The notes beneath the pieces were generated by a model. The model saw nothing but the letters and a program-made list of their open reading frames with translations, was not told the origin of the DNA and searched no databases. A stretch of DNA of 64,000 nt from positions 868,001-932,000 of the forward strand of contig NW_026940736.1 of NCBI RefSeq assembly GCF_032062105.1, read 5' to 3'. Positions within the stretch are counted from its first letter, which is position 1. Each line of letters begins with the position of its first letter. The position numbers were made by a program, and so were the translations under genes. This DNA is from Saccostrea cucullata (lineage: Eukaryota). Of the stretch, positions 16,028 through 51,600 are shown piece by piece.

Positions 16028-19000
16028 ATGATGGACTACAACGCAATTTTGGATTTCGGAGATAACCCTGTCACAGATGTAGTAAGTTCACTCAAACTCT
16101 CCTTTGTAATGTTAACATACTTAACTATTGGAGCACAAACCTTAATTTGATATTTTAAAAAAGTATATCCAATACCAAGTATTTAAGGTATTTCTGTGGT
16201 AAATTAATTACTTTATTTTATTAGCATATGAAATAATCAATAATGATCCAGATATCTGGCCAATACCCTCTTGTTTTTATATTGTCATATGGTTCCCAAA
16301 TCTCTCCATAGTCAGGTGTTATTTAGAAGGACACCCCTGCTGTTTTCTAGGTTATAAAAAAATATTTCTATGTAAAAGTAACAAAAAAGATCTTGAATTT
16401 CTCTCACGAACACCCCCTTCCTCCTGGAAATACAGATTCCTTTTAAAATTGTAATCAGAATCATCTACCTGGTATCTGAAGAAAACTGGTTCAAGGAAAG
16501 ACCCCCCCCAATGGGATTTTTAATTTTGCATTTATTCCTGTCCCTGTACATATGTCTTTGAGAGGCTGCTTCTTGGGAGGGGGGATGGTATGGATTTTTT
16601 TGTGGAGGTTGTTTTTGTGTTTTATTTTATTTTACTTTAGGTGGTCAAAAATGCACTCCTGTTAGATTTAGATTTTAAAGACCTTCAAGGCCTAAAGCAA
16701 GTAATAACAGTGGGGGAGGGGGGGGGGGGTTATGCACAACTTGACATTTTTAGCTCAGCTGAGCCGAAGGCTCAAGTAAGCTTTTCTGATCACATTTTGT
16801 CCGGCGTTCGTCTGTCCGTCTGTCTGCCTGTCTGTAAACTTTTCACATTTCGACTTCTTCTCAAGAACTGTTGGGCCGGTTTCAACAAACTTGCCACAAA
16901 GCATCCTTAGGTGAAGGGAATTCAAGTTTGTACAAATGAAGGGCCACGCCCTCATTCAAGGGGAGATGATTGGGAATTAAGAAAAATTTGATTGCATGCA
17001 TGTTTTAAAAGTCTTCCTCTCAAGAACCACTGTGCCAGGAAAGATGAAACTTATATGCAAGCATCTTCAGGTAGTGTAGATTCAAGTTTGTTCAAATCCT
17101 GTCCCCCGGGGGTAGGGCGGGGCCACAATTGCCGACCAAAGTTTGACATAGAAACATATAGGAAAATTCTTTAAAAATTTTCTTCTCAAGAACCACTGTG
17201 CCAGGAAAAATGAAAGTTATATGGAAGCATCCTCGGGTAGTGTAGATTCAAGTTTGTTCAAATCATGACCCCCGGGGGTAGGGCGGGGTCACAAAGGCCG
17301 ACCAAAGTTTTACATAGAAATATATAGGAAAATTCTTTAAAAATCTTCTTCTCAAGAACCACTGTGCCAGGAAAGATGAAACTTATTTGGAAGTATCCTG
17401 AGGTAGTGTAGATTCAAGTTTGTTCAAATCATGACCCCCGGGGGTAGGGCGGGGCCAAAATGGACGACCAAAGTTTTACATAGAAATATATAGGAAAATT
17501 CTTTTTCTCAAGAATAACAAAGTCATGATTGGTCATGGGACTACTTTTGGATTTTAACTTTTCAATAATGATCGAACCAATTTCTACTTTTTCCTCGCCA
17601 CAGTGCTCAGGTGAGCGAGCGATGCGGCCCATGGGCCTCTTGTTTGGATGGACATTACAAAGTAAAAGTTCCTTGACATGCCATATAAATATTGGTATAT
17701 TTAGAAGGTCATCAAAACTAACTATTGAGGGGTACATTCATTCTTCCCTTAAATCATTTTTATGCATTCTAACAAACATTTAAACTTGCTGATCAAATAA
17801 ATATTTTCAGGACACAAAACTGAAGATCTTGAAGTTCAATTATTCGTGGGTCGACGCTGTGGAGGAGGAAGAGAGATGTGTGGAGGTACAGAATAGAAAT
17901 TATCTATGTATAAGATATATAATAGAAATTATCTATATATAAGATATATAATAGAAATTATCTATGTTTAAGTTATATATAATAGAAATTATCTATGTAT
18001 AAGTTATAAAATTGAAATCATCTATGTACAATTAATATAGTAAAAATTATCTATGATTAAATTATATAATAGAAATTATCCAATGATTAAGGTATATACC
18101 AATATAGAAATTTTCTATGTTTAAGTTACAGAATACAAATTATCTATGATTGAGTTATTAGTATAATACAAATTGTTTATGTTTAAGTTATATTATAGGA
18201 ATTATTTATGCATATGATACTATTGGTAGGAAATTTATCAATGTATATGATTAATATATGGGGAATTATCTGTATTTAAGATAAATATTAGTTTACCAGT
18301 ACCTTCATGTCTTTATATTAATAGAAAAATACCCCCTTTTAAGTGATTTTTTGGTTGTTATGGGTTTTTTTTTTCAAAAAGTGACAAACAAATATTGTGA
18401 CAATGGATTTTGTAAGATTTTGTGTAAAAAATTAATTTGATATACATTTTCATGCTCATGTTTCATATATCCCCATTTTTTATATGGAAGGAGGAGCAAA
18501 AGCAGAAAATAGAGAAGAAAAAGTTGGAGAAAGAAATTGTAGAGAAGAAAAATGACAACACAAATGGCATCAGGTATGATCATGCAATCACTGACCCAAA
18601 AATGATTATTGTATTCCAATATGCTATATGTTCTGTTATCATTGTTTGGTGGTAATTTAATGACAGACTTTATAAAATATTGTTGTCATTTGTATTTTTG
18701 TAGAGTTGCAACACCTTTAGATTTTGGACATGAGGCAGTGAAAAACTGGGTAAGTACATGCATTTAGAATCCAGTTTGTATCTTCTCAAATATACACAAC
18801 TGATATTGTTGCTAATATATTTACATTACCAATGTCTTTATCTAAAATAAAACTACAAATAAGGTAATGGCTTTATAGCCCTAGGGAAGGATATGGAGAT
18901 AACGAACAGTAGTCAATATCAAAGTCCAATAAACAATACAAAATGGGAGCAGAGCAAACACGGATCTCCTAAACATCAGAGGTGGGATCAGGTGCCATGG

Positions 19001-26058: not shown

Positions 26059-26204
26059 TAGATTTTATTTTAAATCATTCTGATAAAAAAAATGCTGAAA
26101 ATGTTGAATTAATCAAACAAAGACTTGTACTAGAACAGCATTAGGGATTTTTGTCAATATAATTAAAATCAAATGTTAGATCTGCGCGCGTATTGGCTAA
26201 AATC

Positions 26205-26940
26205 TAGTCCGAAAATCTGACGTTTTCCTATGGCACGCCAAATTCACAAAAATGAGATAAACCTAGTTTCACAATTGATAAACTAGGTTTAACGATTGTA
26301 AACTATAGTTAACGATTCGTAAACTATAATTAACGATTCGTTAAGTATAGTTTTCATCTGTAAAACTATATTTAACGGTCGTTAACTATAGTTTACGAAT
26401 GATAATCTAAGTTTATCTGTCTGAATAAAGCGTTAACAATAGATTTTGTTGATAAACATAGATTCACGTTTGTAAACTATAGTTTACACTCGTAAACTAT
26501 AGTTAAGAGTTGTTAATCATAGTTTCACAAATCGTGAAACTATATTTATCAGATCGTTAACTATAGTTAACGGTTTGTAAACTATAGTTTACAAATCGTG
26601 AAACTGTATTTATCAGATAATCTATGTTTTGCAATCGCAAATGATAGTTTTCGGTGTTAAGTATAGTTTACGGTTGTGAAACATAGATTATCGCGATAAC
26701 TATAGTTTACAGATGTAAAATATAGATAAACGTTGTCAACTATAGTTTACAGTCCGTAAACTATAGTTTACAACCGATAAACCTAGTTAATCGATTGTGA
26801 AACTATGATTATCTCATTTTTGTGAATTTGACGTGCCATATTTTCCTGGCTTTTTTTTACGATTTTGATATTTTACATGCCTGGCATGTAAAATATCAAA
26901 ATCGTAAAAAAGCCAGGAAAACGTCAGATTTTTCAGACTA
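26205..26940. mobile_element. Palindromic MITE with TAG..CTA ends and a 9-bp TSD (AcademH- or MULE-like), interrupted by a nested element
   Basis: TSD gctaaaatc at 26196-26204 and 26941-26949; without the insert it is a near-perfect ~120-bp hairpin centred on catgcc-t-ggcatg. Confidence 0.8.
26229..26840. mobile_element. IS3EU-like non-autonomous element filled with ~21-bp palindromic repeats
   Basis: TATGG...CCATA termini, ~50-bp TIR, 6-bp TSD ttttcc (26223-26228 and 26841-26846); the interior is ~25 copies of GTAAACTATAGTTTAC-like palindromes. Confidence 0.8.
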
Positions 26941-27552
26941 GCTAAAATCTAACAACATCTTGTAGAGTGTCACGTCAGAGGTCAAATTCTATCAACAAAT
27001 CAAAAAGTCGACTGCAAAATTATCGTATTTTAATTTTTTTAATATATTGAAACGAATAAGTCAATAGTTGTTGCGTATTTGATATCTGATGGGATGTTCT
27101 TAGATGATGTGTAGCGAGTATGCGAGAGGATCAATCATGCTATTTTACTTAGGTTGCGATTTTGTTAAACTATATTTATATATTTTCAGTAGATTCGAAT
27201 AACTGATGAGCAGGTCAATTCAACTTGAACATGATATCATTTCTCCAAGGATGAAATAAGTATCTCTGTACTCAAGCATTGATATTTCTAAACTGAAACT
27301 GAAACCGGTCATACATGCAGACTACTGGTCCACTAAATCAAAAGTTATGGACAAGGTTAAAGTTTTTGCAGACAGACAAACAGCTAAACAGACAGACGGA
27401 TGGACATGACAAAACTATATACATGTATATATCCCTGAAACTTCGTTTACGGGGGCATAAAGATACGTTTTACATAGTAAATACATAGAAAATAAATGTA
27501 ATATTGTTTATAAATGTATTTTCAGGTACTGTTGGACTTGAGTTCGTAGTTA

Positions 27553-28501
27553 TTATGCCCCCGTAAACGAAGTTTTGGGGGTATATAGTTTTTGTCTTGT
27601 CCGTCCGTCTGTCTGTCTGTCTAGTTGTCTGTATGTCTGCCTATCTGTTTGCCCGCAAAAACTTTAACCTTGCCCGTAAATTTTGATTTAGTGGAGCCAT
27701 GACTTTCATATTTCACATGTGTATTCCTTGTGACAAGACATTTTGTTGGGTACCACAAAATTTGACATTTTGACATTGACCTTGGAATTTGACCCACTTT
27801 TACATGAAAATTTAAACTATTTCTTTGGCCATATCTTTTTAACAGTTTAAACCAGGACCTTTATACTTTACATATGTATTTTTTGTTGAAAGAACTTTCA
27901 CTGGATGCCAACAACCTTGAACCTTTGACCTTGACCTTGTATATTTCCGTACTTGTGAAAGAACTTTAACCTTGGTAATAACTTTTGAAAGGTAAGGGAT
28001 AGGGCTTTTATACTTCAAAAGTGTAATTCTCGTGAAAAGACCCTTTATTGGATGCCAAAAACTGTGACCATTTGACCTTTACCTCTGAGTTTGACCTACT
28101 TTAAAAAGCAATTACTGACCAAAACTTTTAAAGGGTTAAGGTTAGTGTTTTCATACTTTACATATTTAATCCTTGTGACAAGACCTCTCATTTGATAACA
28201 AGAACTTTGACCCTTTGACCTTGCAGTTTGACCTACTTAAAAAAAAACAACCTAGGCCATAACTTCTGAACGGTTAAGGTGAGGGCTTCCATATTTGCGT
28301 ATTCTATGTGACAAGACCCTTCATTGGATACCAATTACCTTGACCTTTTAACATTGGCCTACTTTCAAATTTCACAAATGTTTTCCAGTGAGAAAACCCT
28401 ATTTTTGGTACCAATTAATTAAATTTGCATTTAGCAAAAGTTTAATCTTTGCTATGTTGCCATACGGGGGCATCAGTGTTGTTTCACAAACACATCTTGT
28501 T
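27553..28501 (+). mobile_element. Helentron-like non-autonomous element
   Basis: atgcccccgt...gggggtat 5' end, gtccgtctgt microsatellite, tgaccttga tandem units, gggggcatcagtgt...ttcacaaacacatcttgt 3' end. Confidence 0.75.
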
Positions 28502-28808
28502 TGGTGATCGAATTGTTTTGATTAATTTTTACAGTTTATAATTTTATATACTTTTATTGCCAGGGGTATACAAGTTTTGAAGGCCTGAGTTATTATAACC
28601 CCATTTAATAATTTAACGAGATTCACACACATATACCGGTATATGAAGCTTGGAAGTACATTGTATTTTAAAAGAACACAGTTGATTCAAAATCTGTTTT
28701 TACTGGGCACTCCACAAATTAACCAGTAATTACGGAGTAAGTATGTGATTATTCTTCTTGATTGCGACAAATATTTGGGGCTAAAAAAAGTTTCAGAAAC
28801 AAGGAAGA

Positions 28809-30170
28809 CAAGATGTGTTTGTAAAACACAAATGCCTGCGTATGGTAACATAACGAAGGTTAAGCTTTCTCAAATGTAAGACCTTTTCACAAGAAATACA
28901 AATGTGAAATATGACACACTATCACCACCTGATCAAAGGTTATGACCAAGGTTAACGTTTTTAAAGGTAAGACAAACTCTGGGGTCAAGATCAAAGGGTC
29001 AAAGTTGTTGGTTTCTAAAAATAGACATTGTCTCAAAGATTACATATGGGAAGTATAAAAGTTATGGCCCTTACCGTTCAAAAGATATAGCCAAGGTTAA
29101 GGTTTGTTATAAGTACATGTAAGTCAAACTTCAAGATCAAGTTTAAAGGGTCAAAGTTGTTGATATCCGATGGAATATCTTGTTCAAGAATTACATATGA
29201 GTAGTATGAAAGCTCTATCCCTTACTGTTTAAAAGTTATGGCTAAGGTTAAAATTTGTAAAAAGTAGGTCAAACTCCAAGGTCAAAGTGTAAAAGATGTT
29301 GATATCCTTGAAAGGTCGTTTTACAAAGATAACATTTATGAAATCTGAAAGCCCTAGCCCTTATCGTTCAAATGTTATGGTCAGGGTTAAAATTTTATCG
29401 TAAGTACGGAAATGTCCACAATAAAGGTCCAAAGGGCAAAATTGTTGGTTTCAAACGAAATTGCCACAAAGAATTAATATTTGAAACGTTTAAAAATGAG
29501 TGCAAAAGTAAAAGTTTGTATTTTTGTGTAAAAATGAGTCAAACTCTAAGGTCAAAGGGTCAAGGTTCTTGAAATCAAATGAAAGGGCTTGTCATGGTTC
29601 CTTTTGGTTCCTTGTGGAACATAGAGCTTAGGTAACAGTTAAAAAGGCTGGTCACCAGGATTAAATATGTGAAGTACGAAAGCCCTAACCCTTCAAAATT
29701 ATGTCCAAGGTTGTGTTTGAAGAGTAGGTCAAACTCCAAGGTCCAAGTCGAAGGAACAAAGGTCTTCGTATCCAATAAAGCGTCTTCTGACAAGGATAAC
29801 ATAAATGAAATCCTAATTCTTAACATTCAAAATTATGTCCAAGGTTTTATTTGAAGAGTAGGTCAAACTCCAAGGTCAGAGTCAAAGAATCATAGGTTTT
29901 CGTATCCAATAAAGCGTCTTCTCACAAGGATTACATACCTGGTGTGTGAGGTATGAAAGCCTTAGCCCTTACTGCTCAAAAGATATGTCCATAGTATAAG
30001 TTTGGAATTTTGTGTAAAATAGGGTGAAACTCTGAGGTCAAGGTCAAGAGGTCAAATTCGGTGGTACCCAAAGAGAGTTCTTGTTACAAGGAATGCAAAT
30101 TCAAAAATTATGGGCAATGTTAAAGCTCTTGCAGACAAACAGACAAACAAACGAACGGACAAACAATATA
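28809..30170 (-). mobile_element. Helentron-like element related to 27553-28501, in inverted orientation
   Basis: Begins acaagatgtgtttgtaaaacac (reverse of the 3' end above), carries caaggtcaa units, ends with an acagacaaac microsatellite. Confidence 0.7.
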
Positions 30171-30552
30171 CTTAGCTTAGTACCCAAGAAACTACGTTTA
30201 CAGAGTCAAAAAATACTTCGTTTAAAAACAAAACACTGAGTAATATATACAATAGACATACATGGAAATTTATGTACGGCATAGAAGTACTTAAAAGGCA
30301 AACTGCTCCATAAACTGTAACCTGGGACGGCGGCGCCGAGAGTATCACATATAAAGTTCCCCCTAACTTCGTTGAGGTCAACTAAAAATTAAAGAGAGCA
30401 TGAATTATTCCCTGTCCAAAGAAAAAAGGAACACAGAAGCCGCCTAAAAATATCAAGCAGAAAATAACCCAGTATATCTTTGAATTGTTTTCAGATGCTT
30501 TTTTGCATTAACAAATGACGACAAGAAATCAGCCTGATGACAAAAAATACAC

Positions 30553-31700
30553 ATGTGTGGATCCAGAGGGAGTGGGGGTGGGTGGGTGGGGGAGTCAGAA
30601 CCCCCCCCCCCGGAATTTACACGGTTAAAAAATGTCTATACTAAAGAAAAAAGTGTTACCATGGACCCCCCTGGTAAACGCGAATATATGTGATATGGGT
30701 ATGAAAAGTGAAAGATTTGAGGCAATAGAAGTCATAGACTAAAACCCCAGTCACATTTCCAAAAACGACCAACGGCCGACGGGTTTCGAAGCAAAAGTGG
30801 GATTCTGCGGGTGGCAGTCGTCAGTTCATCGGCCGTTGTCTTGCCCGATTTTGACCATTTTTTTTTGTCGGCCGACCAATTTTGTGTCCATCGGTCCAAG
30901 TTATAATTTTTTAAGCATCGGGGGCCGATTCCTTCAATTGAAGTTATCCGTCGACCAACCTTCGATCATCGTTCGACCATCGGTGGTCAGTTTATTAAGT
31001 CGGTCGTCCGTCGTTGGACAAAAAGGGTGTTTAAAATTTCGGCCGATGGTTAAAATCAAACTGTAGCTCAGAGCTCGGACGACGATTGGCCGACTTGTGA
31101 TTATTTAACCTGGTAAGAAAACATAACACAAACAAAATTTTGATGCATGGATTGAAATAAAATTTTTGAACGGAAATAACATGAATAATTAATCCGTAAG
31201 ATATAAACAAATCTTAAGCATTCTTTGCTGCTTAGATATGCACCATTTGTCGTTTTTATGCAATTTCATACAAAATTTTGCACACATTTTCAACATTGAG
31301 TAACAATTTTATAAGATTCTGCCACTTAGCCTTGCAAACATTACTCACGTCACCTATCTGAATATAGAACTATGAAAACATATTGCTGAATTCTAAAGAA
31401 AACAGATTTTTTGTGTTATTTATCCAAATTATCGGTGTCCCTAGGAATTAATGTGACTGCTCAGTGTCGACCGATACTGTATCGGCCGATAATGTTCTTT
31501 CAGCCGACAAGATCAAAAAAATTTAGTCGCCCGACCATCGGCTTAAATGTGACCTAGGCATAACCCCCCCCTCTCATCCCAAACGAAATAGGTTTTTGAC
31601 GTTTGGGCGAGTTTAGGTTTTTTCCTGCTTGTCAAGAAATTTCTGGGAGTGGATCCCCCCCCCCCCCCACCACCTGGAAAAAATTTCTGGATCCGCGCCT
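30553..31700. mobile_element. GGATCC-type MITE carrying a nested TIR element
   Basis: Ends atgtgtggatccaga / tctggatccgcgcct, with G- and C-runs typical of bivalve MITEs. Confidence 0.6.
30743..31560. mobile_element. PIF/Harbinger-like MITE (TAA TSD)
   Basis: Imperfect TIRs sharing gtcacattt / aaatgtgac; TAA at 30740-30742 and 31561-31563; internal ggccga/tcggcc repeats. Confidence 0.6.
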
Positions 31701-32002
31701 AAATACATGTACACAGCTGTTTGACCAATTTTTTTCTTTGTTTCTTTAGAGCTACATTATATGTACATAGTTAGCAAAATTGCAGGAACAAGGTCATCTT
31801 CGCTAGCCAAGGGTTTTTATGGGGAGCGGTGCGGACCGAAAACTCTTGGCTTGCGAAGATGGGACAAGGTGATCAGACCATACATGACTCTTTTTACGCT
31901 AGGAACGTGACATAATGTCGTCAAAAAACACGTTTTGTGATCAGTCAGATTACTGTACCTTGTCTTTTTGCATCGCACATTAATATGCGACGAAAAAGGA
32001 TG

Positions 32003-32105
32003 AGGTGGTCCGACTGTATCTATGACGTCACTTAAACGTAACAATCAGTGTGACGCAACAATCATAACTACAACAAAAAGCGGAGACGAGAGGCAAAACA
32101 CGGAG
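32003..32105 (+). promoter_or_regulatory. Putative promoter and non-coding exon 1 of novel gene copy B
   Basis: Highly similar to 15780-15882, including TGACGTCA (32023-32030), TGACGCAA (32051-32058) and the ggag|gtaaaa donor. Confidence 0.55.
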
Positions 32106-32246
32106 GTAAAAGTCACCCAGATATTTGTCTTTTTAGATCAAAACAGTGTCATACATTAGGATATTCTGTTTCAAACACGTGTAAGAAAATTAGGTACTTT
32201 TATCATGATAATATGTTTATTTTCTTTTCGTAGAAGAAGAAAAATC

Positions 32247-35200
32247 ATGGATTTCAACAAAATTTTGGATTTTGGAGATACCCCCGTTGCAGATGTGGTA
32301 AGTTCACTTAAATTCTCTCCTACGTAATGTTTACATTCATAACTTTATTGGAGCCCAAACCTTAATTTGAAAATGTCAAAAAATATATCCAATGCCGAGT
32401 ATTTTAGTTACTCAGTATTTCTGTGGTAAATAACTTTATTATTCTGGATTTCCCTAGCATCTAAAATTATGAATTATAATCCCGAGATCTGGCCAATACC
32501 CTCTTGTTTTTATATTGTCATACGGTTCTCAAATCTCTCCATAGTCAGATATCATTTAGGTGGTTGTTTTGTGTTTTAATGTTTTATTTTGTTTTCTCTT
32601 GCTGGACAAAAATGCACTCCTGTTAGATTTGGCTTTTTACAGACCTTCCAGGCCTAAAGCAAGCAGTTTCAATTGGGATGGAGGGGGGGGGGGGGGGGGG
32701 GGAGGTATGCACAACTTAACATATTTTGGTTGGACATTACAAAGTAAAAAAAAAAATCCTTGACATGCAATATATATATTGTAATATTTATCGGGTCATC
32801 AAAAGTAATTATTGAGGGGTACATTCATTCTTCCCTAAAGTGGTTATATCTGCCCATTATTTATGGTTAAAAGGGAGGGGGTCCACTTAGGTGTTAGTTT
32901 AGGTTTGAGGTTAAGTGTTTGAGTTTTTGGCAGCATTTCTCCTTATCTCCCATGTGTATAGATATTTTGAGATATAGGTAGGGTAGGGTCGTCATGTTTC
33001 AGGTTCTTGTATGCCCACTTTGCATTCTGTCAATCATTTCAATTTGCTGATCAAATAAATATTTTCAGGACACAAAACTGAGGATATTAAAGTTCGATTA
33101 TTCATGGAGTGATGCTGTTGAGGAGGAAGAGAGACGTGTGGAGGTACAGAATAGAAATTATCTCTGTATAAGTTATATATAGAAATTATCTATGTATTTG
33201 TTATATAATAGAAATTATTTGTGTATTAGTTTATATATAATAGAAATTATCTATATATAGGTTATATACTAGTAATAGAAATTATCTATGTATAATTTAT
33301 ATAATAGAAATTGTGTATGTTTAAGTTACAGAATAAAAATTATCTATGATTAAGTTATATAATAGAAATTATCTATGTTTAAGTTTCATAATTGGCATTA
33401 TTTATGTATATTAAGATACTATACATAGGAAATTTTCAATGTATAAGATAAATATATGGGAAATTATCTATGTTTTAGTTTACCAGAACTTTCATGTCTT
33501 TACATTTATAGAAAAATACCCCCTTTTTGAGTAATTGTAGGTTGTCATGTCAATAAATTTTGTGCCAATGGTTTTTTTTTATATAATTTTGTCTAAGAAA
33601 ATGAAGTTGATATACATTTCCATGCTGATGTTTCATATATCCACATTTTTTTGTCTTGAAGGAGGAACAAAAGCAAAAAATACAGATGGAGAAAAAGTTT
33701 GAGAAAAAAATTGCAGAGAAGAAAAATTACAACACAAATGACAACAGGTATGGTCATGCAATAACTGACCCCCAAATAACTATTCCAATATGCTATGTGT
33801 TCTGTTGTCAATGTTTGGTGGTACATTTAATGACAGGCTTTATAAAATATTGTAGTCATCTGTATTTTTGTAGATTTGCAACACCTTTAGATTTTGGAGA
33901 TGAGGCAGTGAAAAATTGGGTAAGTACAAGTATTGAGAATCTGATTTGTATCTTTTCAAATACTCAACACATATTGTTGCAAAAACATTTTCATTTCCAA
34001 TGTCTTTGTGCGAGATAAAACTACAAAAAAGATAATGACTTTATAACCCCATACAGAGATTTGCTAAGCACACAACACAACTTATTGCTTTTTTGCTGCA
34101 TGTTGCTTAGTAATACACCTGTTGGGGATGCTGAGATTTTCTACTAAAAGCTATTATTGAATATTATATAACTGAATCAAGGATCAGGTAAAAATTTAAA
34201 ATATAAGGAATAACTGTCTGTCTCTTTGTTTTTATTATGATGATCAATCAATTTGCTCCAGTGATAATTTTACATAAATTCTTTCAGCGTATATGCAAAT
34301 TATCATGGAAGCGAATGGATTGATTGCATCAGTTTTTGCTAAATAATACCCATCAGACAGGAATATTTTGATAATCAATGTTTGTACATGCAGGTACATC
34401 AAAACATGTTAAGTCCAACTTTATATAATTTGCAGGTTTTCATGCATTTGAAGAAATAAATAAATAATACATGTCTATATGTTTAACATGTTTTTCTATT
34501 TTGTTCTGTATTTAGGAAACAAAGCTCCAGATCCTCAAGTTTAGTTATAGCTGGGCAGATCAGGTTGAAAAAGAAGAAAAAGCAGCAAGTCAGGTAACAT
34601 TTCTGCTAAATGAATCAAATTTCAAATTATAATACCACTCTGACATGCATTTGGGATTATTTTCATACATTTGATATGGCAACTCTGACATCCCAATTAC
34701 CATTTTATTTGTGTAGGAGGCAAAACCTGCAGAGAACAGAGTTCCAAAGGAAGAAAATAAAACAAATAATAGAAGCTTTGGAAAAACCCTGACAAAAGAT
34801 GAAGTAAACTTTCTTTTGGAGGGAAATAAAAACTCTCCAAGGGGGTTAGTCACTTTTTTAAACTTTTGACATTGTAAAATAAATATTAAAATCTTTATGG
34901 TGTTTATCAGTACCCTGCAATATTTTTCCACAGTAATAATTTAAATATCTGAGCCATAAATAATTGTATACCTCAAGGATGATGCACTTAACTTTGAAAA
35001 TATGTATTTGAATTTTTTTTAACTACTTTAATTTATGGCAATTAAATATATACATGATATATAAGCTTGGAAACTTACTTAATTTAATCAATTACAGGAG
35101 GCTAAAAGCTTTCATAAGAAAGCGGAGAGAAGAAGAAGAAGCCAAGGCCTGTATCAACGAGGAAAACAAAACAAAGACTTCTAGAAATGGTGGAACCCTG

Positions 35201-38200
35201 ACAAAAGACCAGGCCATTGCAAAAAAGTCTCCTAGGGGGTTAGTCACCTTTTTCAGTTTTTAGGTCACCTGAGTAAACTCGGGTGACCTATTGCTATTCG
35301 TTGTTGTCGTCTTCGTGCGTCGTCTGTCATGCGATAACATTTGAACATTTTCAGCTTCTTCTCTGAAACCGCTCAACCAATTTCAACCAATTTTGGCACT
35401 AAACATCTATGGGTAAAGGGGAACATAAATTGCGAATTTCATGGTCCCTGCCCTCCCTTGGGGCCTGGGGGTGGGGCCAAAACCACTAAAATTAGTGCAA
35501 TTGTAGAAGTTCGGGCTTTACGGACCGTGGATATCGGCCTGGATAGCTCAGTGGTTAGAGCACCTGACTAGTAATACAGGGGTCCCGGGTTCGATTCCCG
35601 GTCCAGCCATATGTTTTTCTTCGTGCATTTCTCCTTTCCTACTACATTTGGTGGCCAGTGTGGGGGGCTTTGTTCAGGTTTCAGTGTATGTGTAAATTAG
35701 TAATTCCTGGCAGGGCCCTAGAACTTGTGTCTTCGAGGTCGAAGACTGTTTAAAGAGGGAGGAATGTAGAAGTTCGGGCTTTATGGACCGTGTATATCGG
35801 CCTGGATAGCTCAGTGGTTAGAGCACCTGACTAGCAATACAGGGGTCCCGGGTTCGATTCCCGGTCCAGCCATATGTTTTTCTTCGTGCATTTCTCCTTT
35901 CCTACTACACAATCTTTAAAAATCTTCTATGAATCTGGACATCAAGCAATCAAACTGTTGGCATGATTGTGATCAGCATTGAGTCCTCTACCAAAATTGT
36001 GAAATCCATGGCTCCAGGGACAGGGGTTCTAGTGCTAGGGTGGGGCTAAATAGGCTGTATAGTGAAAATGCATTATTTCTTTGCAAATTTTCTTTTCTGC
36101 TCCTGGGCATTAAATAACCTAACCAAGTATATAGTTATGTTGAATAAGATTGCCTCTTCCAAAATTGTGAATTTCATGAGCTCAGGGTCAGGGGTTCTGG
36201 TGTTAGGGTGGGGTTCTGTTGATTATATACTGAAAATGCATAAATTCTTTAAAAATCCTCTCATATGTTCCTGGGTATAAAACCAATGAACTGTGTATAT
36301 AGTTATGATGAGGAAGGATGCTTCTTCCCAATTTATGAATTTCATGACCCCTGGGTCAGGGGTTCTGGTGTTAGGGTGTGGCTCTATAATGATTATATAG
36401 TGAAAATGCATGAATTCCTTGGAAATCTTTTCCTTTGCTCCCTGGTATAATGCCAATGATTTAACTATATATTTATAATGAAGAAAGCCTGATGTTTCCA
36501 AATGATTAATTTCAGAGCCCCTGCATTAGGGGTACTGCAGACAGGGGTAGGGGGTTACATATCCTGAAAATATAGTAATGCTTTGAAATCTGCTCTTTGA
36601 TATCAATCACCCATTTCGGATAAAATGAAATTTATAAAATTTCCAAAATGTTGAAATATGTGGCCCCAAGGTCAGTGGTTCTTCTGGGTTGGTGTGCACA
36701 ACTGGTGGTTATAAAGTGGAAATGCATTTTCTCTCTGTTACTCTGATCTGCCTTTGGGTATTAAGTAACCAAAATAAGCATGCTAAGTGTAAAGTTTTGA
36801 TAAACAATGGTGCCTTTTTCAAAATAGTGAATTACGAGGCTTTTGGTTTAAAATAGTCAAACCAAATTCAGTTGTTGGAGAATTGTTACATGTTCCTTAG
36901 GTGACCTATAAGGCCCGTGGGCCTCTTGTTTTTTTCAGTTTTGACATTGTTAAGTAAATATATTATTTGCATAATTAAGGGTTTTCCTCCCTTTCTTTCA
37001 ATTAGTACTTTGATATATATTTATACCCCTCGCTTGAAAAGTGGGAGGGTATACTGTAATTGGAATGTCTGTCCGTCTGTATAGCAGTCCATCTAAATGT
37101 CTTTCTGTCCATCCATCTGTTACGTTTTGGGGTACCCATCTCTTATCTGAAACTCCTCATATACTACTGAGTGAAATTTAATGAAACGTTCACAGAATCT
37201 TTATGACATATTTCCAATGTCAACCTCCTATTTTAGTTTTTGATCGGACACATATTTCGGGTTTCCATAGCAAAACATGGACACTGCCTTTTTATACATA
37301 TGGGAGGCGGGGGTATCATATAGTGAGCTCATTGCTCACAATACATCAATCCTGATACTAAAACCTAGGAAAATATCGATATGGATTTCTGACATATAAC
37401 TTAATTTTAAGCTTGCAAACTTATTTTAAATAATTTATTTATTTACAGAAAGCTAACAGCATTTATCAAAAAACACAAAGAAAGGGAACTTGCAAAGGCC
37501 TTGATTGAAAGAGAAAACATAAAGAAAGTACAGGTAAAATGATCATTTCTTTATTAGACAACTGTGATTTACTTGTTTAAACTTTTTCTGAAAGCTATTT
37601 GAATGGAATAAGAACCAAAGTTACAATAATAAGATTATTATTGAGTATAATACAAACAAAATGGTAAACAAACCATTTCTTCCATTATTTAAGGCTGCTG
37701 ATTTCACAAAACAGAAAGATGCAGTGAATACGGAAAAGGCATTAGATCAAGAAGCTTTTGGAGATGAGAAGGAATCCCCTGTTCTAGAGACTCCAACATT
37801 TGGAGATGAGAAGGAATCCCTTGTTCTAGAGACTCCAACATTTGGAGATGAGAAGGAATCCCTTGTTCTAGAGACTCCAACATTTGGAGATGAGAGGGAA
37901 TCCCTTGTTCTAGAGACTCCAACATTTGGAGATGAGAAGGAATCCCCTGTTCCAGAGACTCCAACATTTGGAGATGAGAAGGAATCCCTTGTTCTAGAGA
38001 CTCCAACATTTGGAGATGAGAAGGAATCCCCTGTTCCAGAGACTCCAACATTTGGAGATGAGAAGGAATCCCTTGTTCTAGAGACTTCAACATTTAGAAA
38101 TGAGAAGGAATCCCTTGTTCTAGAGACTCCAACATTTGGAGATGAGAAGAAATCCCTTGTTCTAGAGACTTCAACATTTAGAGATGAGAAGGAATCCCTT

Positions 38201-39026
38201 GTTCTAGAGACTTCAACATTTAGAGATGAGAAGGAATCCCCTGTTCTAGAGACTCCAACATTTGGAGATGAGAAGGAATCCCCTATTCCAGAGACTCCAA
38301 TGGATGTGAAGAAAGATAGCCATAAACCGGAAGAGCTCTTGATGGATGAAAAAATAGCAACACCAATTGGAGATACCGAAGTCTTAGAAGTCAACAAGGA
38401 TCTGAAGATAACACTTGAGGTATTAAAACACAGCATTCACATGTATTTGCAGATGAATTATGAATTACAATTAGGCAAAAGAGATTTGTAAAAATTCCTA
38501 TTCATTTACACTTTTAATGTTCTTTCTATAATTTTTGAAAGTTGTTAAAATATTTTTGTTAACTATCACTTTCAGCTTTTGAATAAGGATGATGATAAGT
38601 ATGGTGATGATGAAGATGACATTGCTGATGATGATGATGATGATGACTGCTTATTTGGGCCAAGAAAGCTATTCTTCTTTGGCATAGATTATTTTAAGGT
38701 AAAGCAAATCTTCATTATTTCATAACTTTCTCAATTTGTATAGTGAGAGCCTGAGAGGAGGAAAAATATTTTATTTTTAGTGACAATGTAAATTATTAAA
38801 TTTACATCAATATCTTTATTGTCTTTACAAATATTTCAAAGACTTCCAATCAACCGAAATGAAAAAAAAAATGTCACCCCCTTCCATCCTAATGTTTAAT
38901 AAAGTTCAGTTTAATTAACATAGTAAATAAAACTGATTAAATTCAATTCTTGTTAAAATATTTCATTAATGATTTTTTTTCCTAATTTTTCATCTGATAC
39001 AGGATGCTGGAAAAGCTGTGTGGTGA
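32247..39026 (+). CDS. Uncharacterised multi-exon protein, copy B (~520 aa); coding exons 32247-32297, 33069-33143, 33662-33747, 33874-33919, 34516-34593, 34717-34844, 35098-35238, 37449-37533, 37694-38419, 38576-38698, 39003-39026
   Basis: Same 11 coding exons and phases as copy A; all indels are multiples of 3. MDFNKILDFGDTPVADV-DTKLRILKFDYSWSDAVEEEE...; ends DAGKAVW* (TGA where copy A has GGA). Confidence 0.8.
35536..35609 (+). tRNA. tRNA-Thr(AGT)-like sequence within the 5' LTR, probably not a functional tRNA
   Basis: Cloverleaf with A box TAGCTCAGTGG, B box GGTTCGATTCC and T5 terminator at 35614-35618; one-nt bulges in the acceptor and anticodon stems. Confidence 0.6.
35799..35872 (+). 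tRNA. tRNA-like copy within the 3' LTR (anticodon position reads AGC)
   Basis: Identical to 35536-35609 except AGT to AGC. Confidence 0.55.
37757..38302 (+). repeat. Coding minisatellite, 13 x 42 bp (FGDEKESPVLETPT)
   Basis: Units start at 37757, 37799 ... 38261; copy A has one unit in the same exon. Confidence 0.95.
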
Positions 39027-39559: not shown

Positions 39560-40854
39560 CCAAGAGGAAAAGGTTGACAAGGGCTCAGCAATATAATGAG
39601 TCAGGAGAGCTGAAGGATCATGAACACATCAAATAAACACGGACAGGTCCTCGTGAAGGAACTAGCAAAATCTTAGTTTTCCAACAAAATGGCTTTAAAA
39701 AATACACAATAAAAACATGTTCATGTATTTTTATTGTAATGGTACAAGGTTCAAATAACATATATTGTATCCATCTCATTAAGAAATCCGCCAACAGTAA
39801 TTATATGTATTATAAAAACAAAATTCAAGGGAAGTAACCAGGTTACAACCTAATGTCAGAATTGTAAATTGAATACTCAATAAAATCCAGTATTAAAGAT
39901 AATATATTTATGTTTTGCCTCAACAAAATCCACTGATTAAAGATAAGTATTTGTAGCAATTTGTTTCTAGTTATTTTCATTATCCCCTAATTACAACCAC
40001 ATTTAAACTAAGTCAATGCATTCATAACATTTGTAGAAAAAAAAATTAAGAACAATCAATTCAAAGACTATGTACATGTAACTTTTACATTAAACTGTCT
40101 TCTGGTTATTTAAGCTTGAATTCTTGTAGATAATTTCATGAATTTGAATTTCACTCCTAACGAGAAATGATATGACAATATTGCAAGGAAAGGAAGGGGA
40201 GACAATTTATATAAGAAAAAAAGGGGAGTAACTCTTGCTGAGGTAATATTTGGAATTTATGAGATTTTCCAGGTGGTCTCTGAACAGATCAGAAAGAATC
40301 ACAAGTGCAATATTTGAGATTGTTTAACCATTTTAGATTTAATTTTATGCTTTATTTTCATGCTAAGCACGATTCCCCTTCCATCCTTGATTAAACAATT
40401 TTCAGAGGAAACGGCAAAATGCACTTTTACTTTACAAAAAAAAACCAAGATTTGCACCGGTCCCGTTACTTTGTAAAGAATTTGATAAAGCACCATTTTC
40501 TGAGTGACCTAATTCTGTATCACAGTCAATGTTGAACTCTGAACTCTGAAGTTTGCTGGGAGAACAGATTGGGGACAAAGTTTCGATGCACTGATCTGTC
40601 CCCGAGATCTGTCCATTCTTGGAGAGTTCCTCTGGGGATTTTGTTGTGCTTTTCTCTGGGGATGAACTGTCAAAAAGGGAGGAAGTTAAGACACTGACTG
40701 GGGACTTGCCTTCGATGATGTCGGACAATGTTCGGTTTAAGGTGTCGGGATTTTCTAAGTCTTCGTCACTTTCATCGTCACTTTCACTCAAAGAATCATT
40801 GCGATATGGTGGTCTTGATACTGAGGAATTATGGGTTAGCCTCAGCTGGAGTAC
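39560..40854 (-). pseudogene. EVI5: Duplicated EVI5 3' end: most of the terminal exon (40453-40854) plus downstream/3'UTR-like sequence
   Basis: Near-identical to 51846-52247 (SESDDESDEDLENPDTLNRTLSDIIEGKSPVSVL...) and to ~49880-50860. Confidence 0.85.
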
Positions 40855-41706
40855 CTAGAGAAACTTGGCAACGAAGGGTCTGTTTGTTAGAACCCAGCAC
40901 TCTGACTCATCGCCGAATTTTTTCTCATCCTTGTGATGATGACTTTTGTGGCAAACGCTGCAGAGGATACTGTTGCATTCATGACAGTGCTTCAGTTTTC
41001 GTACCTCCCTTGCTCCACAAATGTCACATGTCTCTTCTTGCTGTGGCGCGGAATTATAGTAATCGTCAAAGAATTCTTGAACTTCATCACTGTCACTGTC
41101 ATTTTTTATTATATGTTTCATCAGTGTAATTATATTTTTGTCATGAAATGAGAATTTATAGTAATTCTTTGATAGCCGACGATCATCGTACGCGTACAGC
41201 GAGATAGGAACGCTGTTTTCTGTGGTTGTTACATTTTGGACATATTTTCTGTACATCTCCTGGCCATTACGGGAAAACTTGGCAACGAAGGGTCTGTTTG
41301 TTAGAACCCAGCACTCTGACTCATCGCCGAATTTTTTCTCATCCTTGTGATGATGACTTTTATGGCAAACGCTGCAGAGGATACTGTTGCATTCATGGCA
41401 GTGCTTCAGTTTTCGTACCTCCCTCGCTCCACAAACGTCACACGTCTCTTCTTGCCGTGGCGCGGATTTACAGTAATTGTCAAAGAATCCTTGAACTCCA
41501 TCTTTCGGAATAAATACGCCCTGCCTGCAGATTGGACACTTAACGGAGGAATCTGAATTTGAAGGGGTGGCGGCTATAATGTTGTCAATACACGGACTGC
41601 AGAACGTGTGAGAGCAGGGTAGAATTTTTGGAACTTTATCCGGAGTGGAAAACTGATATGCACATACTGGACAGTTTGAGTCGTTTTGTTGTTGTTGTTC
41701 ATCCAT
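40855..41706 (-). pseudogene. Rearranged paralogue of the RING gene (RING plus two B-box-like copies, propeller mostly deleted); 283-aa open ORF, pseudogene or young chimera
   Basis: First ~128 aa nearly identical to 10395-11966; two internal in-frame deletions, an insert from non-coding DNA (41105-41178, matching ~41990-42060) and a duplicated B-box segment. Confidence 0.75.
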
Positions 41707-44882: not shown

Positions 44883-45230
44883 AAATAATCAATTCTAACA
44901 TATGTACATACATGGAACTTTTCCATTAACTGTAATCTGGTTATAATAGCTGGAATTCTTGAAGAAAATCTCATGAATTTGAATTTCATTCCAAAAGAAA
45001 AATGATATGAAAATATTGAAAGGAAAGGAAGGGGAGACAATTTATATTATAACAAAGGGCAGTTACTCTTGGTGAGGTAATATTTGGAATTCATGAGATT
45101 TTCCAGGTCATCTCTGAACAGATCAGAAGAATCACAAGTGCAATATTTGAGATTGTTTAACCATTTTAGATATATTTTCATGCGAAGCACAATCCCCTTC
45201 CTTTCAAAATAGATCCTAAATTAAAAAAAA

Positions 45231-47070
45231 ATGGAGAAAAATAAAACAAAGAATACAAGCATTCAAGGAACCTGTCCAAAGAACCTGACAAACTCTCATT
45301 TGGAGAAAAATAAATTAAAGAATACTAGCATTGGAGGAATCTTAACAAAAAACCAGGCAAACCCTCATTTGGAGGAAAATAAAACCAAGAATACCAGCAT
45401 GGAGGAACCTTACCAAAAACCCAGCCACTCATGGTGAGGAAAATAAAACCAAGAATATCAGCATTTGAGGAACCTCACCAAAAGACCAGGCAAACCCTCA
45501 TTTGGATGAAAATAAAACCAAAAATACTAGTTTTGGAGGAACCGTACCAAAAGACCAGGCAAACTCTCATTTGGAGGGAAATAAAAACCAAGAATGCCAG
45601 CATAAGAGGAACCTTACCAAAAGATCAGGAAATGTCTCATTTGGAGGAAAATAAAACCAAGAATACCAGCATTGGAGGAACCTTTCCAGAAGACCTGGTA
45701 AACTCTCATTTGGAGGAAAATAAAACCAAGAATACCAGCATTGGAGGAACCTTTCCAGAAGACCTGGTAAACTCTCATTTGGAGGAAAATAAAACCAAGA
45801 ATACCAGCATTGGAGGAACCTTTCCATAAGACCTGGTAAACTCTCATTTGGAGGAAAATAAAACCAAGAATACCAGCATTGGAGGAACCTTTCCAGAAGA
45901 CCTGGTAAACGCTCATTTGGAGGAAAATAAAACCATGAATACCAGCACAGGAGCATCGTCGGAAACCCACGGGTGATCTAGTCTTTACTTATCACCCGTG
46001 GGCAAACTCGCCGAAAAATCGTCGTATGTAATAAATCTGCATTGGTCATTTGATTGGCCGATTCACAGAGTCGCGATGCCAAACAACAAAATACAGTTCA
46101 CGTTACCAAATTCAATAATTGATATCGAGTAGAGACGACTATAAAGGGTTGGAGTGGACATATGCATGTTCGGCATTGCCAAAACATGAAAAACTCATTC
46201 CGTAGTGAACACAGATGATAAATCCACTCACCGGTGCATTTTGCAGTTAGAAAGAGGTACTCCTATAAAATATCTGACGGATATCAATGTCAGTGACCTG
46301 TACGAATTGACTTTCATAGTTTTAAATCAAACTTTGCACTGGAGTATCAACACTCAACTTGAGTTCACTCCAAAAAGGGAAGAAGAAGAAGAAGTTTTAA
46401 CGAGCGTCAAAATATTTACCATAAATAGCAAAGTAATAAACGTATTTTTCAAAAATGAAGATTTCCAATTTTCTGATTGGTTGACTAGAAAAACAAATTA
46501 GCATATTTTACGGCGATATTTCAGCGAGTTTGCCCACGGGTGATAAGTAAAAACGAGATAACCCGTGGGTTTCCGACGATGGCACTGGAGGAACCTTACC
46601 AAAGAACCAGGCAAACCTTCATTTCGATTAGGAAAAAACCAAGAAGACTTGGTAAACTCTCATATTAAAGAAAATACAACCAAGAATAATAGCTTTGGAG
46701 GAGCCTTAGCAAAAGACCAGGCAAACCCCCATGTTGAAAAAAATAAAACCAAGAATACCAGCATTAGAGAAACCTTACCAGAAGACCTGGTAAACTCTCA
46801 TTTAGAGGAAAATAAAACAAAGAGCACCAACATTGGAGGAACCTTACCAAAAGACCAGGCAAATTCTCATTTGGAGGAAAATAAAACCAAGAATACAAGC
46901 ATTCGAGGAATCTTAACCAAGGAACTGGCAAACTGTCATATTGAGGAAAATAAAACCAAGAGTATCAGCATTGGAGGAAACTTACCAAAAGATCAGGCAA
47001 ACTCTCATTTGGAGGTAAATAAAACCAAGAATTCTAGTACTGGAGGAATCTTACTTACAGACCAGGCAAA
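45231..47070 (+). repeat. 69-bp minisatellite (EENKTKNTSIGGTLPKDQANSHL), ~17 units, split by a MITE
   Basis: Period of 69 between 45641, 45710, 45779 and 45848. Confidence 0.9.
45954..46581. mobile_element. MITE with ~70-bp TIRs and a 9-bp TSD (AcademH- or MULE-like)
   Basis: catcgtcggaaacccacgggt... / ...acccgtgggtttccgacgatg; TSD gcacaggag (45945-45953) / gcactggag (46582-46590). Confidence 0.85.
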
Positions 47071-48662
47071 CTATATATCAAGGAAAAAGTGGATGATAAA
47101 CCAAATACCAAGGAGAAAGTGGATGATAAACCATATGACAAGGAGGAAATGGATGATAAACCAGGTATCAAGGAGGAAGTGGATGATCAACCAGATATCA
47201 AGGAAGAAGTGGATGATAAACCAGATACTAAGGAGGAAGTGGATGATAAACTATATACCAAGAAGGAAGTGGTTGATAAACCATATAACAAAGAGGAAAT
47301 GGATGATAAACCAGATATCAAGGAGGAATTGGATGATAAACCATATACCAAGAAAGCAGTGGATGATAAACCAGATATGAAGGAGGGAGTGGATGATAAA
47401 CCACATACCAAGAAGGAAGTGGATGATAAACCAGATATGAAGGAGGGAGTGGATGATAAACCATATAACAAGGAGGAAGTGGATGATAAACCAGATATCA
47501 AGGAGGAAATGGATGATAAACCAGATATCAAGGAGGAAGTGGATAATAAACAAGATATCAAGGAGGAATTTGATGATAAACCATATGCCAAGAAGGAAGT
47601 GGATGATAAACCAGATATCAAGGAGAAAGTAGATGATAAACCAGATACTAAGGAGGAAGTGGATGATAAACCATATACCAAGGAGGAAGTGGATGATAAA
47701 CCATATATCAAGGAGGAAGTGGATGATAAACCATATATCAAGAAGGGAGTGGATGATAAACCATATACCAAGGAGGATGCGTATGCAAAACCAGATAACA
47801 AGGAGGGCATTGAGGATTAACCAGATTCTAAGGAGGAAGTGGATGATAAACCAGATATCAAGGAGGAAGTGGATGATAAACCATATATCAAGAAGGAAGT
47901 GGATGATAAACCAGATATAAAGGAGGAAGTGGAGGATAAACCATATAACAAGGAGGAAGTGGATGATAAATCAGATATCAAGGAGGAAATGGATGATAAA
48001 CCTGATATCAAGAAGGAAGTGGATGATAAACCAGATATCAAGGAGGAATTGGATGATAAACCATATATCGAGAAGGAAGTGGATGATAAACCAGATATCA
48101 AGGAGGAAGTGGATGATAAACCATATAACAAGGAGGAAGTGGATGATAAACAATATAACAAAGAGGAAGTGGATGATAAACCAGATATCAAGGAGGAAGT
48201 GGATGATAAACCATATACCAAGGAGGGAGTGGATGATAAACCATATACCAAGGAGGAAGTGGATGATAAACCAGATATCAAGGAGGAAGTGGATGATAAA
48301 CCAGATATCAAGGAGGAAGTGGATGATAAACCAGATATCAAGGAGGAAGTGGATGATAAACCAGATATCAAGGAGGAAATGGATGATAAACTAGATATCA
48401 AGGTGGAGGTAGATGATAAACGAGATATCAAGGTGGAAGTGGATGATAAACCAGGTATCAAGGAGGAAGTGGATGATAAACCAGGTATCAAGGAGGAAGT
48501 GGATACATACTGACTTAACTTTTCTTTCATTAGTGTTTAGCTTTATTTGTCCATGTGACCTTGATAAACCAGATATCAAGGAGGAAGTGGATGATAAACC
48601 AGATATCAAGGTGGAAGTAGATGATAAACCAGATACCAAGGAGGAAGTGGATAAACCAGATA
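47071..48662 (+). repeat. 30-bp minisatellite (KEEVDDKPDI), ~50 units
   Basis: ccagatatcaaggaggaagtggatgataaa in strict 30-bp phase from ~47071 to 48506, plus ~3 units at 48562-48662. Confidence 0.95.
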
Positions 48663-51600
48663 TGTGAACAGTGCAATACAAGGACCGCTGTGGATAAGAA
48701 AATAACATCTCTGCACATAAAGAATGAATGTATTGATATAAATAAACCAGGGAAATGCACTTTGATGATGAATAATAATTATGATGGCAAAAGACTTTAC
48801 ATTCATTTACATGCTTTAAATGTTTTTTTTATAATAATAATTTTTGAAAATTATTAAAATAAGTTTGATTATTTTTTTCATAAAATACTTTCAGCTTTTG
48901 AATAAGGAAGATGATAAGAATGGTGATGAAGATGATGATGATAGCTTGTTTGGACCAAGGAAGCTATTATGCTTTGGCATAGATTATTTTAAGGCATAGC
49001 AAATGCATAATGCCAATTTTAGAGGTATTGGACATTGAAAAAATAGACTTAATCTCTCTCTCTCTACTTATTCCAAGACCAAGACCAATCTAGATAGTCA
49101 ACTTTTTCTGAAATTTCACAATTTGGTGACTTTTTATGATAACTTTCATCTACTTGACAAAAAAAAAAAGAAACATCTATGGCAGAATTACAAAAAATAT
49201 GGAAAAAATGTGATAATTTGGTGCTTTTCCAACAATTTTCCATAGGGTCTAATAGTAAAATTTGACTTTTCCAACAATTTCCCATAGGGTCTAATAGTAA
49301 AATTTGACAACTTTTGAGATGGACTCCTAAGAAATCGGAATGTAAACATTCGATATTTTACTCTTAAAACAATAAATTAATATAACAGTAAAAATTAATT
49401 AACTAAAAATTATCAAAATACTTAGGGAAGAAATAATAAGACTCAGCCTCGTTAAGAAAGAACATTTTTCTCACAAAAATAAAATTCATAACAGAAAAAT
49501 ATGTAGAAAAGCATCAATGATTAGATCCTTTGTAAAATCTTCCATGCAGTAATGAGGCAAATCTGGATTGGATCGACATGTACTAGTATGACAAATAAAG
49601 TTCTGTTTAAAAATTATCAGACATTTTGAAGACCAATCTATATTTCAATTGATATGTGTGCATCAACTCTATTGTTGACTACAGGAAGAATAGATAAATT
49701 GACTGCAAATATTTTCTAAGCAAAGATGGAAAGACTAAAATATCTTTATAAACATGAAGGAAATACAATTACATAAATTCAATAGGTCCAAGGGCCTTTA
49801 CAATCATTTGAGTATAATACAAAATATAATGGATCCAAAGAAGTTTAACATAAACTGACAGATGAATCTATGAAGCCCAAACCAAGAGGAAAAGGTTGAC
49901 AAGGGCTCAGCAATATAATGAGTCAGGAGAGCTGAAGGATCATGAACACATCAAATAAACACGGACAGGTCCTCATGCAAGGAAATAAAACCTTTTCCAT
50001 AGGAACTAGCAAGAGTTGCAGCAAACTCTTCTCTTAAATAATAGTTACTACATTCTCTTATTTAAGATCTTTAGAGTTTTCCAACAAAACAGCTTAAAAA
50101 AATACATAATAAAAACATGTTCATATATTTTTATTGTAATGGTACAAGATTCAAATAACATATATTGTATCCATCTCATTAAGAAATCTGCCAACAGTAA
50201 TTATATGTATTATAAAAACAAAATTCAAGGGAAGTAACCAGGTTACAACCTAATGTCAGAATTTTAAGTTGACTACTCAATAAAATTCAGTATTAAAGAT
50301 AATATATTTACGTTTTGCCTCAACAAAATCCAGTGATTAAAGATAAGTTTTTTATGTTTTGCAGGCATGTATTGGTAGCAATTGGTTTCTAGTTATTTTT
50401 GCTATTCCCTAATCACAACCACATTTAAGTCAATGCATTCATAACATTTGTAGAAAAAAAAATCAAGAACAATCAGTTCAAAGATTATGTACATGAACTT
50501 TTAAATTCAATGGTCTTCTAGATATAAAAGCTGGAATTTCTGTAGATAATTTCATAAATTTGAATTTCACTCCTAAAGAAAAATGATATGACAATATTGC
50601 AAGGAAAGGAAGGGGAGACAATTTATATCATAATAAGGGCAGTAACTCTTGCTGAGGTAATATTTGGAATTTATGAGATTTTCCAGGTGGTCTCTGAACA
50701 GATCAGAAAGAATCACAAGTGCAATATTTGAGATTGTTTAACCATTTTTGAAATATTTTCATGCTAAGCACAATCCCCCCTTCCAAAGATCATCCTTGAT
50801 TAAACAATTTTCAGAGAAAACAGCAAAATGCACTTTTTCTTTAAAAACAAAAACAAGATTTCGGCCATAATGAAGAATTGCCAGTATTTCTAGACTACTT
50901 CCAACAAGCCTCAATTGAAAAATAAATACCTTTTTTTCATGTAGCATAAACAATACTTGCAAAATTCTTTGGCACATTAACTCCTGTGAGTATTAACAAT
51001 ATTTGCAATAAATGGTAGTCTTATCCCCATTTAATATCTATATAAATTGTACAATTCAGAAAAAAAAAAAAGATTCAAAGTGAACAAGGCATAAGTTATG
51101 GTTGTGTGGACAAAACAATGTGTAGATCACAGGCAAAATTAAACTAAAATTTTGTTTCAATTAAGTCAGTCTGTCCTCTTTAAACAACTAATTGCATGAA
51201 AGAATGAGATTAAACCATCTCTTTTAACAAATAGATCATTATTTCATAAATACTATTCATAAGTCCCTATTTTCATTTGACTGAAAACAACAAAAAGATT
51301 GCTCTTATTTGTTGAAAGAAATCTACAGTAAAACTTTTTGTTCCCTTGGATATTAAGTTTACAAAAACAGAAATTTCTTTGTTTAAAATAAATTTGTCAA
51401 AAATGATTCTAACTTGTATGTTTCTAAGGGAAATCCTGCAATTTATTAAAACCATGAAAATATTTTAAGAATGGAGAATACATTTATGCATGTCTTGAAA
51501 AATAAATATGATAGGTTACACAGTATTTTTACAAGTACCTTTACAATAACCCAAAAATCTCCAGTGACATTCATCCAAATCTAAAATTCTTTAAAACTAA

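Follow-up and report, generated by a model that had tools for sequence, protein, structure and literature searches.

The locus examined here is a stretch of 64,000 nt of Saccostrea cucullata DNA (the window), which contains no N. It raises the question of whether the duplicated multi-exon genes read from it in an earlier note are real, and whether the module repeated at their N-termini docks on MIF4G proteins through the SLIP1-binding motif (SBM). When the exons were rebuilt from the window, gene A (16028-23180, forward strand; 1086 nt, 361 aa) and gene B (32247-39026, forward strand; 1563 nt, 520 aa) were each obtained with 11 coding exons. All introns were GT-AG with matching phases, no internal stop was present, and every difference in exon length between A and B was a multiple of 3. 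Both models of the earlier note were thus recovered with AG/GT exon boundaries and the frame intact, and so was the twice-repeated N-terminal module, each copy of which is interrupted by a phase-0 intron at the identical place. The genes had been described as hidden; they are indeed missed by the ORF track, but gene A is present in RefSeq, its model being letter for letter P0001 (XP_062594775.1, uncharacterized LOC134256164, S. cucullata), exon 1 included. With part of B exon 9 as the query, this 361-aa protein, identical to model A, was retrieved, and no entry of B's own came up. In B, exon 9 contains a 14-aa unit 13 times, of which A has one copy. The features are listed in Table 1, where the transcription start of A was inferred from sequence and not from mapped 5' ends.

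Table 1. Features of genes A and B and of the related copy C, in positions of the window.
Feature	Position	Strand	Content
A promoter and inferred short 5' UTR exon	15800..15882	+	palindromic CRE TGACGTCA at 15800
A promoter, second CRE-like site	15828	+	splice donor of the inferred 5' UTR exon at 15883
A coding exon 1	16028..16081	+	start codon, first half of module 1 (LDFG), phase-0 donor
A exon 2	17811..17885	+	second half of module 1; junction 2-3 in RNA
A module 1, SBM-like stretch	17844-17873	+	Val at +1
A exon 3	18491..18573	+	charged linker
A exon 4	18704..18749	+	first half of module 2; junctions 3-4 and 4-5 in RNA
A exon 5	19390..19467	+	second half of module 2
A module 2, SBM-like stretch	19423-19452	+	contains SWADQVE
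A exons 6-8	19591-19718, 19993-20133, 22099-22183	+	basic low-complexity middle
A exons 9-11	22343-22564, 22722-22838, 23124-23180	+	acidic region, PR[KR]LFxFG[IV], stop
B promoter CRE and inferred 5' UTR exon	CRE 32023, span 32023..32105	+	donor at 32106
B exons 1-5	32247-32297, 33069-33143, 33662-33747, 33874-33919, 34516-34593	+	two modules
B SBM-like stretches	33102-33131, 34549-34578	+	one per module
B exons 6-8	34717-34844, 35098-35238, 37449-37533	+	rebuilt from the window
B exons 9-11	37694-38419, 38576-38698, 39003-39026	+	rebuilt from the window
High-identity 3' part, A vs B	19390-22840 vs 34516-38700	+	96-99% in exons 5-10 and short introns
Copy C	45229..48993	+	degenerate 3' fragment without module exons

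RNA mapping covered 17750-23450, a stretch beginning 3' of A exon 1. Among the matches listed, which came from three studies, six of the predicted GT-AG junctions were found in RNA (2-3, 3-4, 4-5, 6-7, 7-8 and 8-9); junctions 5-6, 9-10 and 10-11 did not appear in that listing, although exons 10 and 11 were covered by reads. These are real, spliced genes. At diagnostic sites, the reads carried the B letter (37/37 at 19706 and 24/24 at 17855, run X13); what the RNA supports is expression of B or a B-like allele and not of A itself. Exon depth was ca. 10 in run X13 and ca. 0.5 in run X12 of the same study, a ca. 20-fold difference between samples whose tissues are coded.

The earlier note counted three copies (A, B and C). 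The second module exon was matched at least 143 times, on 66 contigs of the 1.17-Gb assembly, a count that is a lower bound on matches yet is inflated by haplotigs, so that the family in S. cucullata comprises dozens of genes rather than 143. The acidic exon had 40 matches in the genome and the SPRG exon 8; the two SPRG junctions in A exons 6-8, proposed to form basic helices, are therefore a property of the A/B subfamily only, and the PR[KR]LFxFG[IV] motif of exons 9-11 is family-wide. A profile search of 1.84 billion proteins returned 30 matches, which belonged to S. cucullata, S. echinata, one protein of Crassostrea virginica and short metagenome fragments of unassigned source species, two of which were checked and both corresponded to the second module exon. 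A word search of protein entries returned no further species with the module family; the profile, of 25 positions, only just detected C. virginica (E 7e-4), and absence from Magallana and Ostrea is not implied. The C. virginica gene (LOC111122280) has one module with the same phase-0 intron. The family is thus large and oyster-restricted, and its RefSeq entries, namely LOC134256164 (gene A), LOC134260298, LOC133192929 (S. echinata) and LOC111122280, share the module with A and B and have the same phase-0 intron where checked. They are annotated singly, and either no family is named or the name reflects composition (tropomyosin-like, golgin-like, myb-like X); a literature search on the family or its genes, the C. 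virginica gene included, found no publication.

Family members carry one to four modules spaced 41-76 aa apart, followed by a variable charged middle, an acidic tract and PR[KR]LFxFG[IV]; in one subfamily, cysteine clusters accompany the latter region. Many members end in a basic amphipathic C-terminal helix, and A and B have no basic tail. These C-termini in other members are new here, as is a family-wide CRE promoter described below. In the C-termini of P0013, P0027 and P0033, cysteine clusters lie beside basic and hydrophobic residues, before or within the amphipathic tail. We take these clusters to resemble typical palmitoylation sites. Module trees were poorly resolved, and copies within some genes grouped together, which is consistent with repeated duplication.

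Over 39 copies, the module consensus is LDFG-x-x-[PA]-V-x3-[DE]-x-KL-x-ILKF-x-Y-[SN]-W-x3-VE-x2-E. AlphaFold predicted for a single module an extended start, a helix at 16-22, a linker and a helix at 29-43 beginning at W29, with no compact fold (pLDDT 83, pTM 0.42), and three modules predicted together did not pack on each other (pTM 0.22). From this predicted structure, we infer that the module may be a segment that folds on binding. The statement that no named family is recognisable held: Pfam searches with the exons, the whole proteins and 39 modules gave nothing above cut-off, ESM Atlas searches gave no usable feature match for the module proteins, and Foldseek and VIA-align with the module model found generic helices only (Z < 3). 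Several candidates were rejected. ATP synthase e matches in a PDB search with A 1-112 were driven by composition; DUF7145 (PF23638) reached 13.4 bits against a cut-off of 28.2, and its genome scan matched no family locus; an SLBP paralogue is not indicated, PF15247 being absent from P0001 and matching one other genome locus only. We also take the module consensus to fit none of the G3BP (FG-type), gamma-ear, clathrin-box and PP1 RVxF motifs fully. One module on the same contig (P0003:135-175) has Arg instead of Trp with the remainder conserved, and is a natural control.

We compared the module with the SBM. In the SLIP1-SLBP structure, contacts are made by Trp94, Val98, Asp96, Glu99, Glu102, Asn93 and Gly95, and the helix starts from the Trp (PMC3763545). 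The helix predicted for the module likewise starts at its Trp within an otherwise unstructured region. Among 56 distinct module exons, the helix positions W0 (55/56), V+4 (54/56), E+5 (56/56) and E+8 (56/56) were near-invariant, so that the conservation of W, V and E expected in homologues was found, and W0 and V+4 were present in all four copies of A and B. The other SBM positions were acidic at +2 (48/56), S/N/D at -1 (48/56) and small at +1 (43/56), and the non-contact positions were Glu at +6 in 23 and at +7 in 43 of the 56; an invariant +8 with a variable +6 goes beyond the pattern of the earlier note. On sequence, the helix has the shape of an SBM. The full SBM pattern occurred in 28/56 modules and its core in 53/56 (A module 1 has Val at +1), and chance expectation for the full pattern is ca. 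0.4 per proteome. Against the resemblance, the sequence S/N-W-x-D/E is itself an ordinary helix N-cap, and the positions i, i+4, i+5 and i+8 simply lie on one face of a helix.

Against 177,635 PDB sequences, the exon profile ranked the SLBP peptide of 4JHK first (E 0.32) and human eIF3g 11-19 second (E 1.6), neither of which is significant. The profile also picked DWAEEME, an SBM-like stretch that lies 1.4 kb 5' of the exons for the RNA-binding domain of oyster SLBP. With the full-module profile, APOBEC2 led (E 0.13); this was a gapped match of 24 residues only, with no Pfam or fold match, and an AID/APOBEC deaminase was rejected. The SWADQVE of A module 2 is identical over seven residues to the heptapeptide motif of human eIF3G, mutation of which abolishes MIF4GD binding (10.1101/2024.09.11.612445). 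Similarly, W6A/V10A in DDX19B abolishes CTIF binding (PMC8373075), and PAIP1 uses the same SBM groove, SLIP1, CTIF and PAIP1 being metazoan-wide (10.64898/2026.07.31.742013). A genome scan with Pfam MIF4G gave eIF4G1-, eIF4G2- and UPF2-like exons only, two weak candidates being left out, and oyster SLIP1, CTIF and PAIP1 were not located in that scan. The comparison with the SBM is partly circular, since the hypothesis was chosen for this very resemblance.

The known carriers (SLBP, eIF3g and DDX19) and the oyster module are alike in a helix starting at Trp, Val at +4, acidic residues at +2, +5 and +8 and a disordered surrounding region, and in most copies also in a polar residue at -1 and a small one at +1. 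They differ in that a known SBM is a single motif of ca. 10 residues with variable surroundings in a protein with an RNA-related domain, whereas the oyster motif is repeated one to four times within a conserved unit of 38 residues in proteins with no folded domain. The 22 columns upstream of the motif are equally conserved and hold 68 bits, against 32 bits in the SBM columns. Thus, of the proposal of an SBM-like motif, the near-invariant contact positions and the two top PDB ranks stood, whereas the motif as the functional unit did not, ten equally conserved residues lying upstream of it. Because no short conserved island amid variable neighbours was found and binding is a prediction, the family is not a proven SBM member; on sequence, it appears to work like an SBM carrier of a novel variant.

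This upstream conservation is not explained by a canonical SBM and counts against the reading that we prefer. It suits a different one, in which the module, over all its 38 residues, is a repeat that folds on binding an unrelated partner, comparable to the inhibitory segments of calpastatin, stathmin or Cip/Kip. The W-x3-VE-x2-E helix would then be no more than its last element, and the likeness of this helix to the SBM would be due to chance. Ten of the 14 near-invariant residues lie outside the SBM, spacing within the module is almost fixed, and the confident, extended, non-globular prediction with no mutual packing of modules agrees with such a repeat. We give it a real chance, somewhat short of even. 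It comes with no candidate partner and no Pfam, Atlas or fold match, it leaves unexplained why two independent SBMs head the PDB list, and the chance expectation of the full pattern stands against it. The specific likeness that we presumed to Cip/Kip CDK inhibitors (xDF..P, YxW..VE and RxLF) was rejected: a CDI domain was not matched in Pfam (E up to 1), a CDK-inhibitor chain was not matched in the PDB (E up to 10), and the RxLF-like motif is positioned C-terminal to the modules, contrary to the order with the cyclin motif first.

The promoters of A and B each contain TGACGTCA once, ca. 225 nt before the start codon, and these are the only two in the window; in both genes, a second CRE-like site and then a splice donor follow. 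In 19 of 20 other distinct family loci, which as related loci are not independent, a CRE lay no more than 1.3 kb 5' of the first module exon identified, against a genome background of one TGACGTCA per 12.5 kb, i.e., 10% per 1.3 kb. The distance was 190-250 nt in most loci. The CRE was also present in promoter types that cannot be aligned with that of A and in the C. virginica gene (85 nt before the start), and a DNA search with the A promoter region gave 29 matches, 28 of them on contigs carrying module exons. The CRE is a conserved, family-linked promoter element and not a common repeat. The family's CRE promoters are TATA-less, and regulation by CREB/ATF would be expected from the element. 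At five loci (L017, L018, L019, L020 and L033), internal modules have their own CRE and UTR exon, often with a Met; therefore, modules were added by duplication of the whole 5' gene end, promoter included, and shorter isoforms from internal promoters are possible at these loci. Genome-wide, TGACGTCA occurs 93,338 times, 6.7x the reversed control, so the octamer is strongly enriched.

Spermatid genes have CREM-driven promoters. The genes may be imagined as encoding tissue-specific structural or self-assembling proteins, for example of the male germ line, with the module mediating homo-oligomers and the CRE promoter working in the manner of those of spermatid genes. Fast-evolving, charged, tandemly amplified and lineage-restricted genes with a conserved TATA-less CRE promoter fit this idea, as does the depth gap between two runs of one study. 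We consider it improbable: the sample tissues are coded, no sign of self-association emerged, the helix, being acidic, is better suited to a basic partner than to pairing with its own kind, and expression in the germ line would be compatible with SBM decoys as well.

Between A and B, dN/dS was 0.39 over the whole coding sequence. The four module exons, at 0.19 (p 8e-5), are under purifying selection; outside them the value was 0.65, which was not significant. Identity was 80-93% in the 5' part and jumped to the values in Table 1 in the 3' part, a pattern suggestive of gene conversion in the 3' half; within that half, common splice sites carry little weight because exons and introns are equally alike. 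Across 65 distinct module exons, third codon positions were 44% identical, compared with 73% and 77% for first and second positions. Every synonymous codon is in use at the invariant residues of the module, all six Leu codons occurring at invariant Leu sites, and the introns flanking module exons are unalignable (31%, background level). Conservation of the two-exon module thus acts on the protein level. That the exons are open only incidentally, in a DNA repeat dispersed through the genome or in a family of decaying pseudogenes, as a decayed copy C and the near-identical 3' halves of A and B might suggest, has a vanishingly small chance. This reading is refuted for the whole family by dN/dS, codon use, the unalignable flanking introns and spliced RNA; the same intron in C. 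virginica also speaks against it. B intron 7 contains a 408-bp insertion (35502-35909) that A lacks, with 145-bp direct terminal repeats, each of which includes a tRNA-like element whose anticodon loop is unusual (35537-35609 and 35800-35872).

Copy C retains the acidic exon, as the earlier note had it, here with a GC donor, but it has no module exons; it consists further of a 69-nt array that is related to exons 6-7 and in which the frame changes, and of a 30-nt array in which a stop occurs at 47818, and it looks dead. A 628-bp element with 73-bp terminal inverted repeats (45954-46581) lies inside the 69-nt array. An intronless RING/B-box gene with a beta-propeller-like tail (10395-11966) and a rearranged partial copy of it (40855-41706) are found on the reverse strand, and 40451-40863 is a duplicate of 51844-52256. 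Together with copy C, these copies probably mark a segmental duplication of the whole neighbourhood. A multi-C2H2 zinc-finger gene at 472-3160 is unrelated to the module family.

Returning to the SBM, we put the chances at about even that the proteins bind SLIP1, CTIF or PAIP1 via an extended SBM and act as inducible multivalent decoys or tethers. They are cytosolic proteins of an oyster-restricted family, charged and for the most part disordered, which arose as a putative docking module of two exons and 38 residues was duplicated repeatedly. The module, predicted not to fold alone, would begin with an extended strand, continue through a short helix and an F-x-Y linker and finish with a helix starting at Trp; this last helix would dock as an SBM in the MIF4G groove of SLIP1/MIF4GD, CTIF or PAIP1, and the 22 conserved residues upstream may extend the interface or contact a neighbouring surface. 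The proteins would thereby compete with SLBP, eIF3g and DDX19 for the groove, and members with a basic amphipathic C-terminus may tether the adaptors at membranes. A decoy or tether role is suggested because no RNA-binding or catalytic domain is present. The CRE promoter may switch the genes on by signal, stress or tissue. The more specific roles proposed earlier have no support of their own: one to four modules at variable spacing, with one in C. virginica, do not match bivalency for the SLIP1 dimer, and a role in histone mRNA translation is not favoured by proteins without an RNA-binding domain when PAIP1 and CTIF share the groove. Occupation of the groove by an outside protein has a precedent in SARS-CoV-2 NSP3, which binds the SBM groove of PAIP1 (10.64898/2026.07.31.742013; PDB 6YXJ as cited there). 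The principle is the same as proposed for the oyster family; NSP3 differs in being a viral folded domain, and no sequence relation to the oyster module was seen.

In the literature consulted, we found only three cellular SBM carriers with one motif each and no report of a dedicated competitor for the groove. It is possible, although we hold this only tentatively and think it rather unlikely in full, that oysters evolved and massively amplified host-encoded, CRE-inducible multivalent SBM decoys that titrate or relocate SLIP1, CTIF and PAIP1 through an extended, probably tighter interface, and so tuned histone-mRNA, pioneer-round and post-export translation, possibly with a further role against viruses that exploit this groove. 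If the SBM reading is true, dozens of repeat proteins around this groove would amount to a new level at which translation is controlled, and the 38-residue unit could be used directly as a peptide that blocks SLIP1, CTIF or PAIP1. If it fails, the module would still be a binding repeat without a name, under strong selection and amplified in rock oysters with a conserved CRE promoter.
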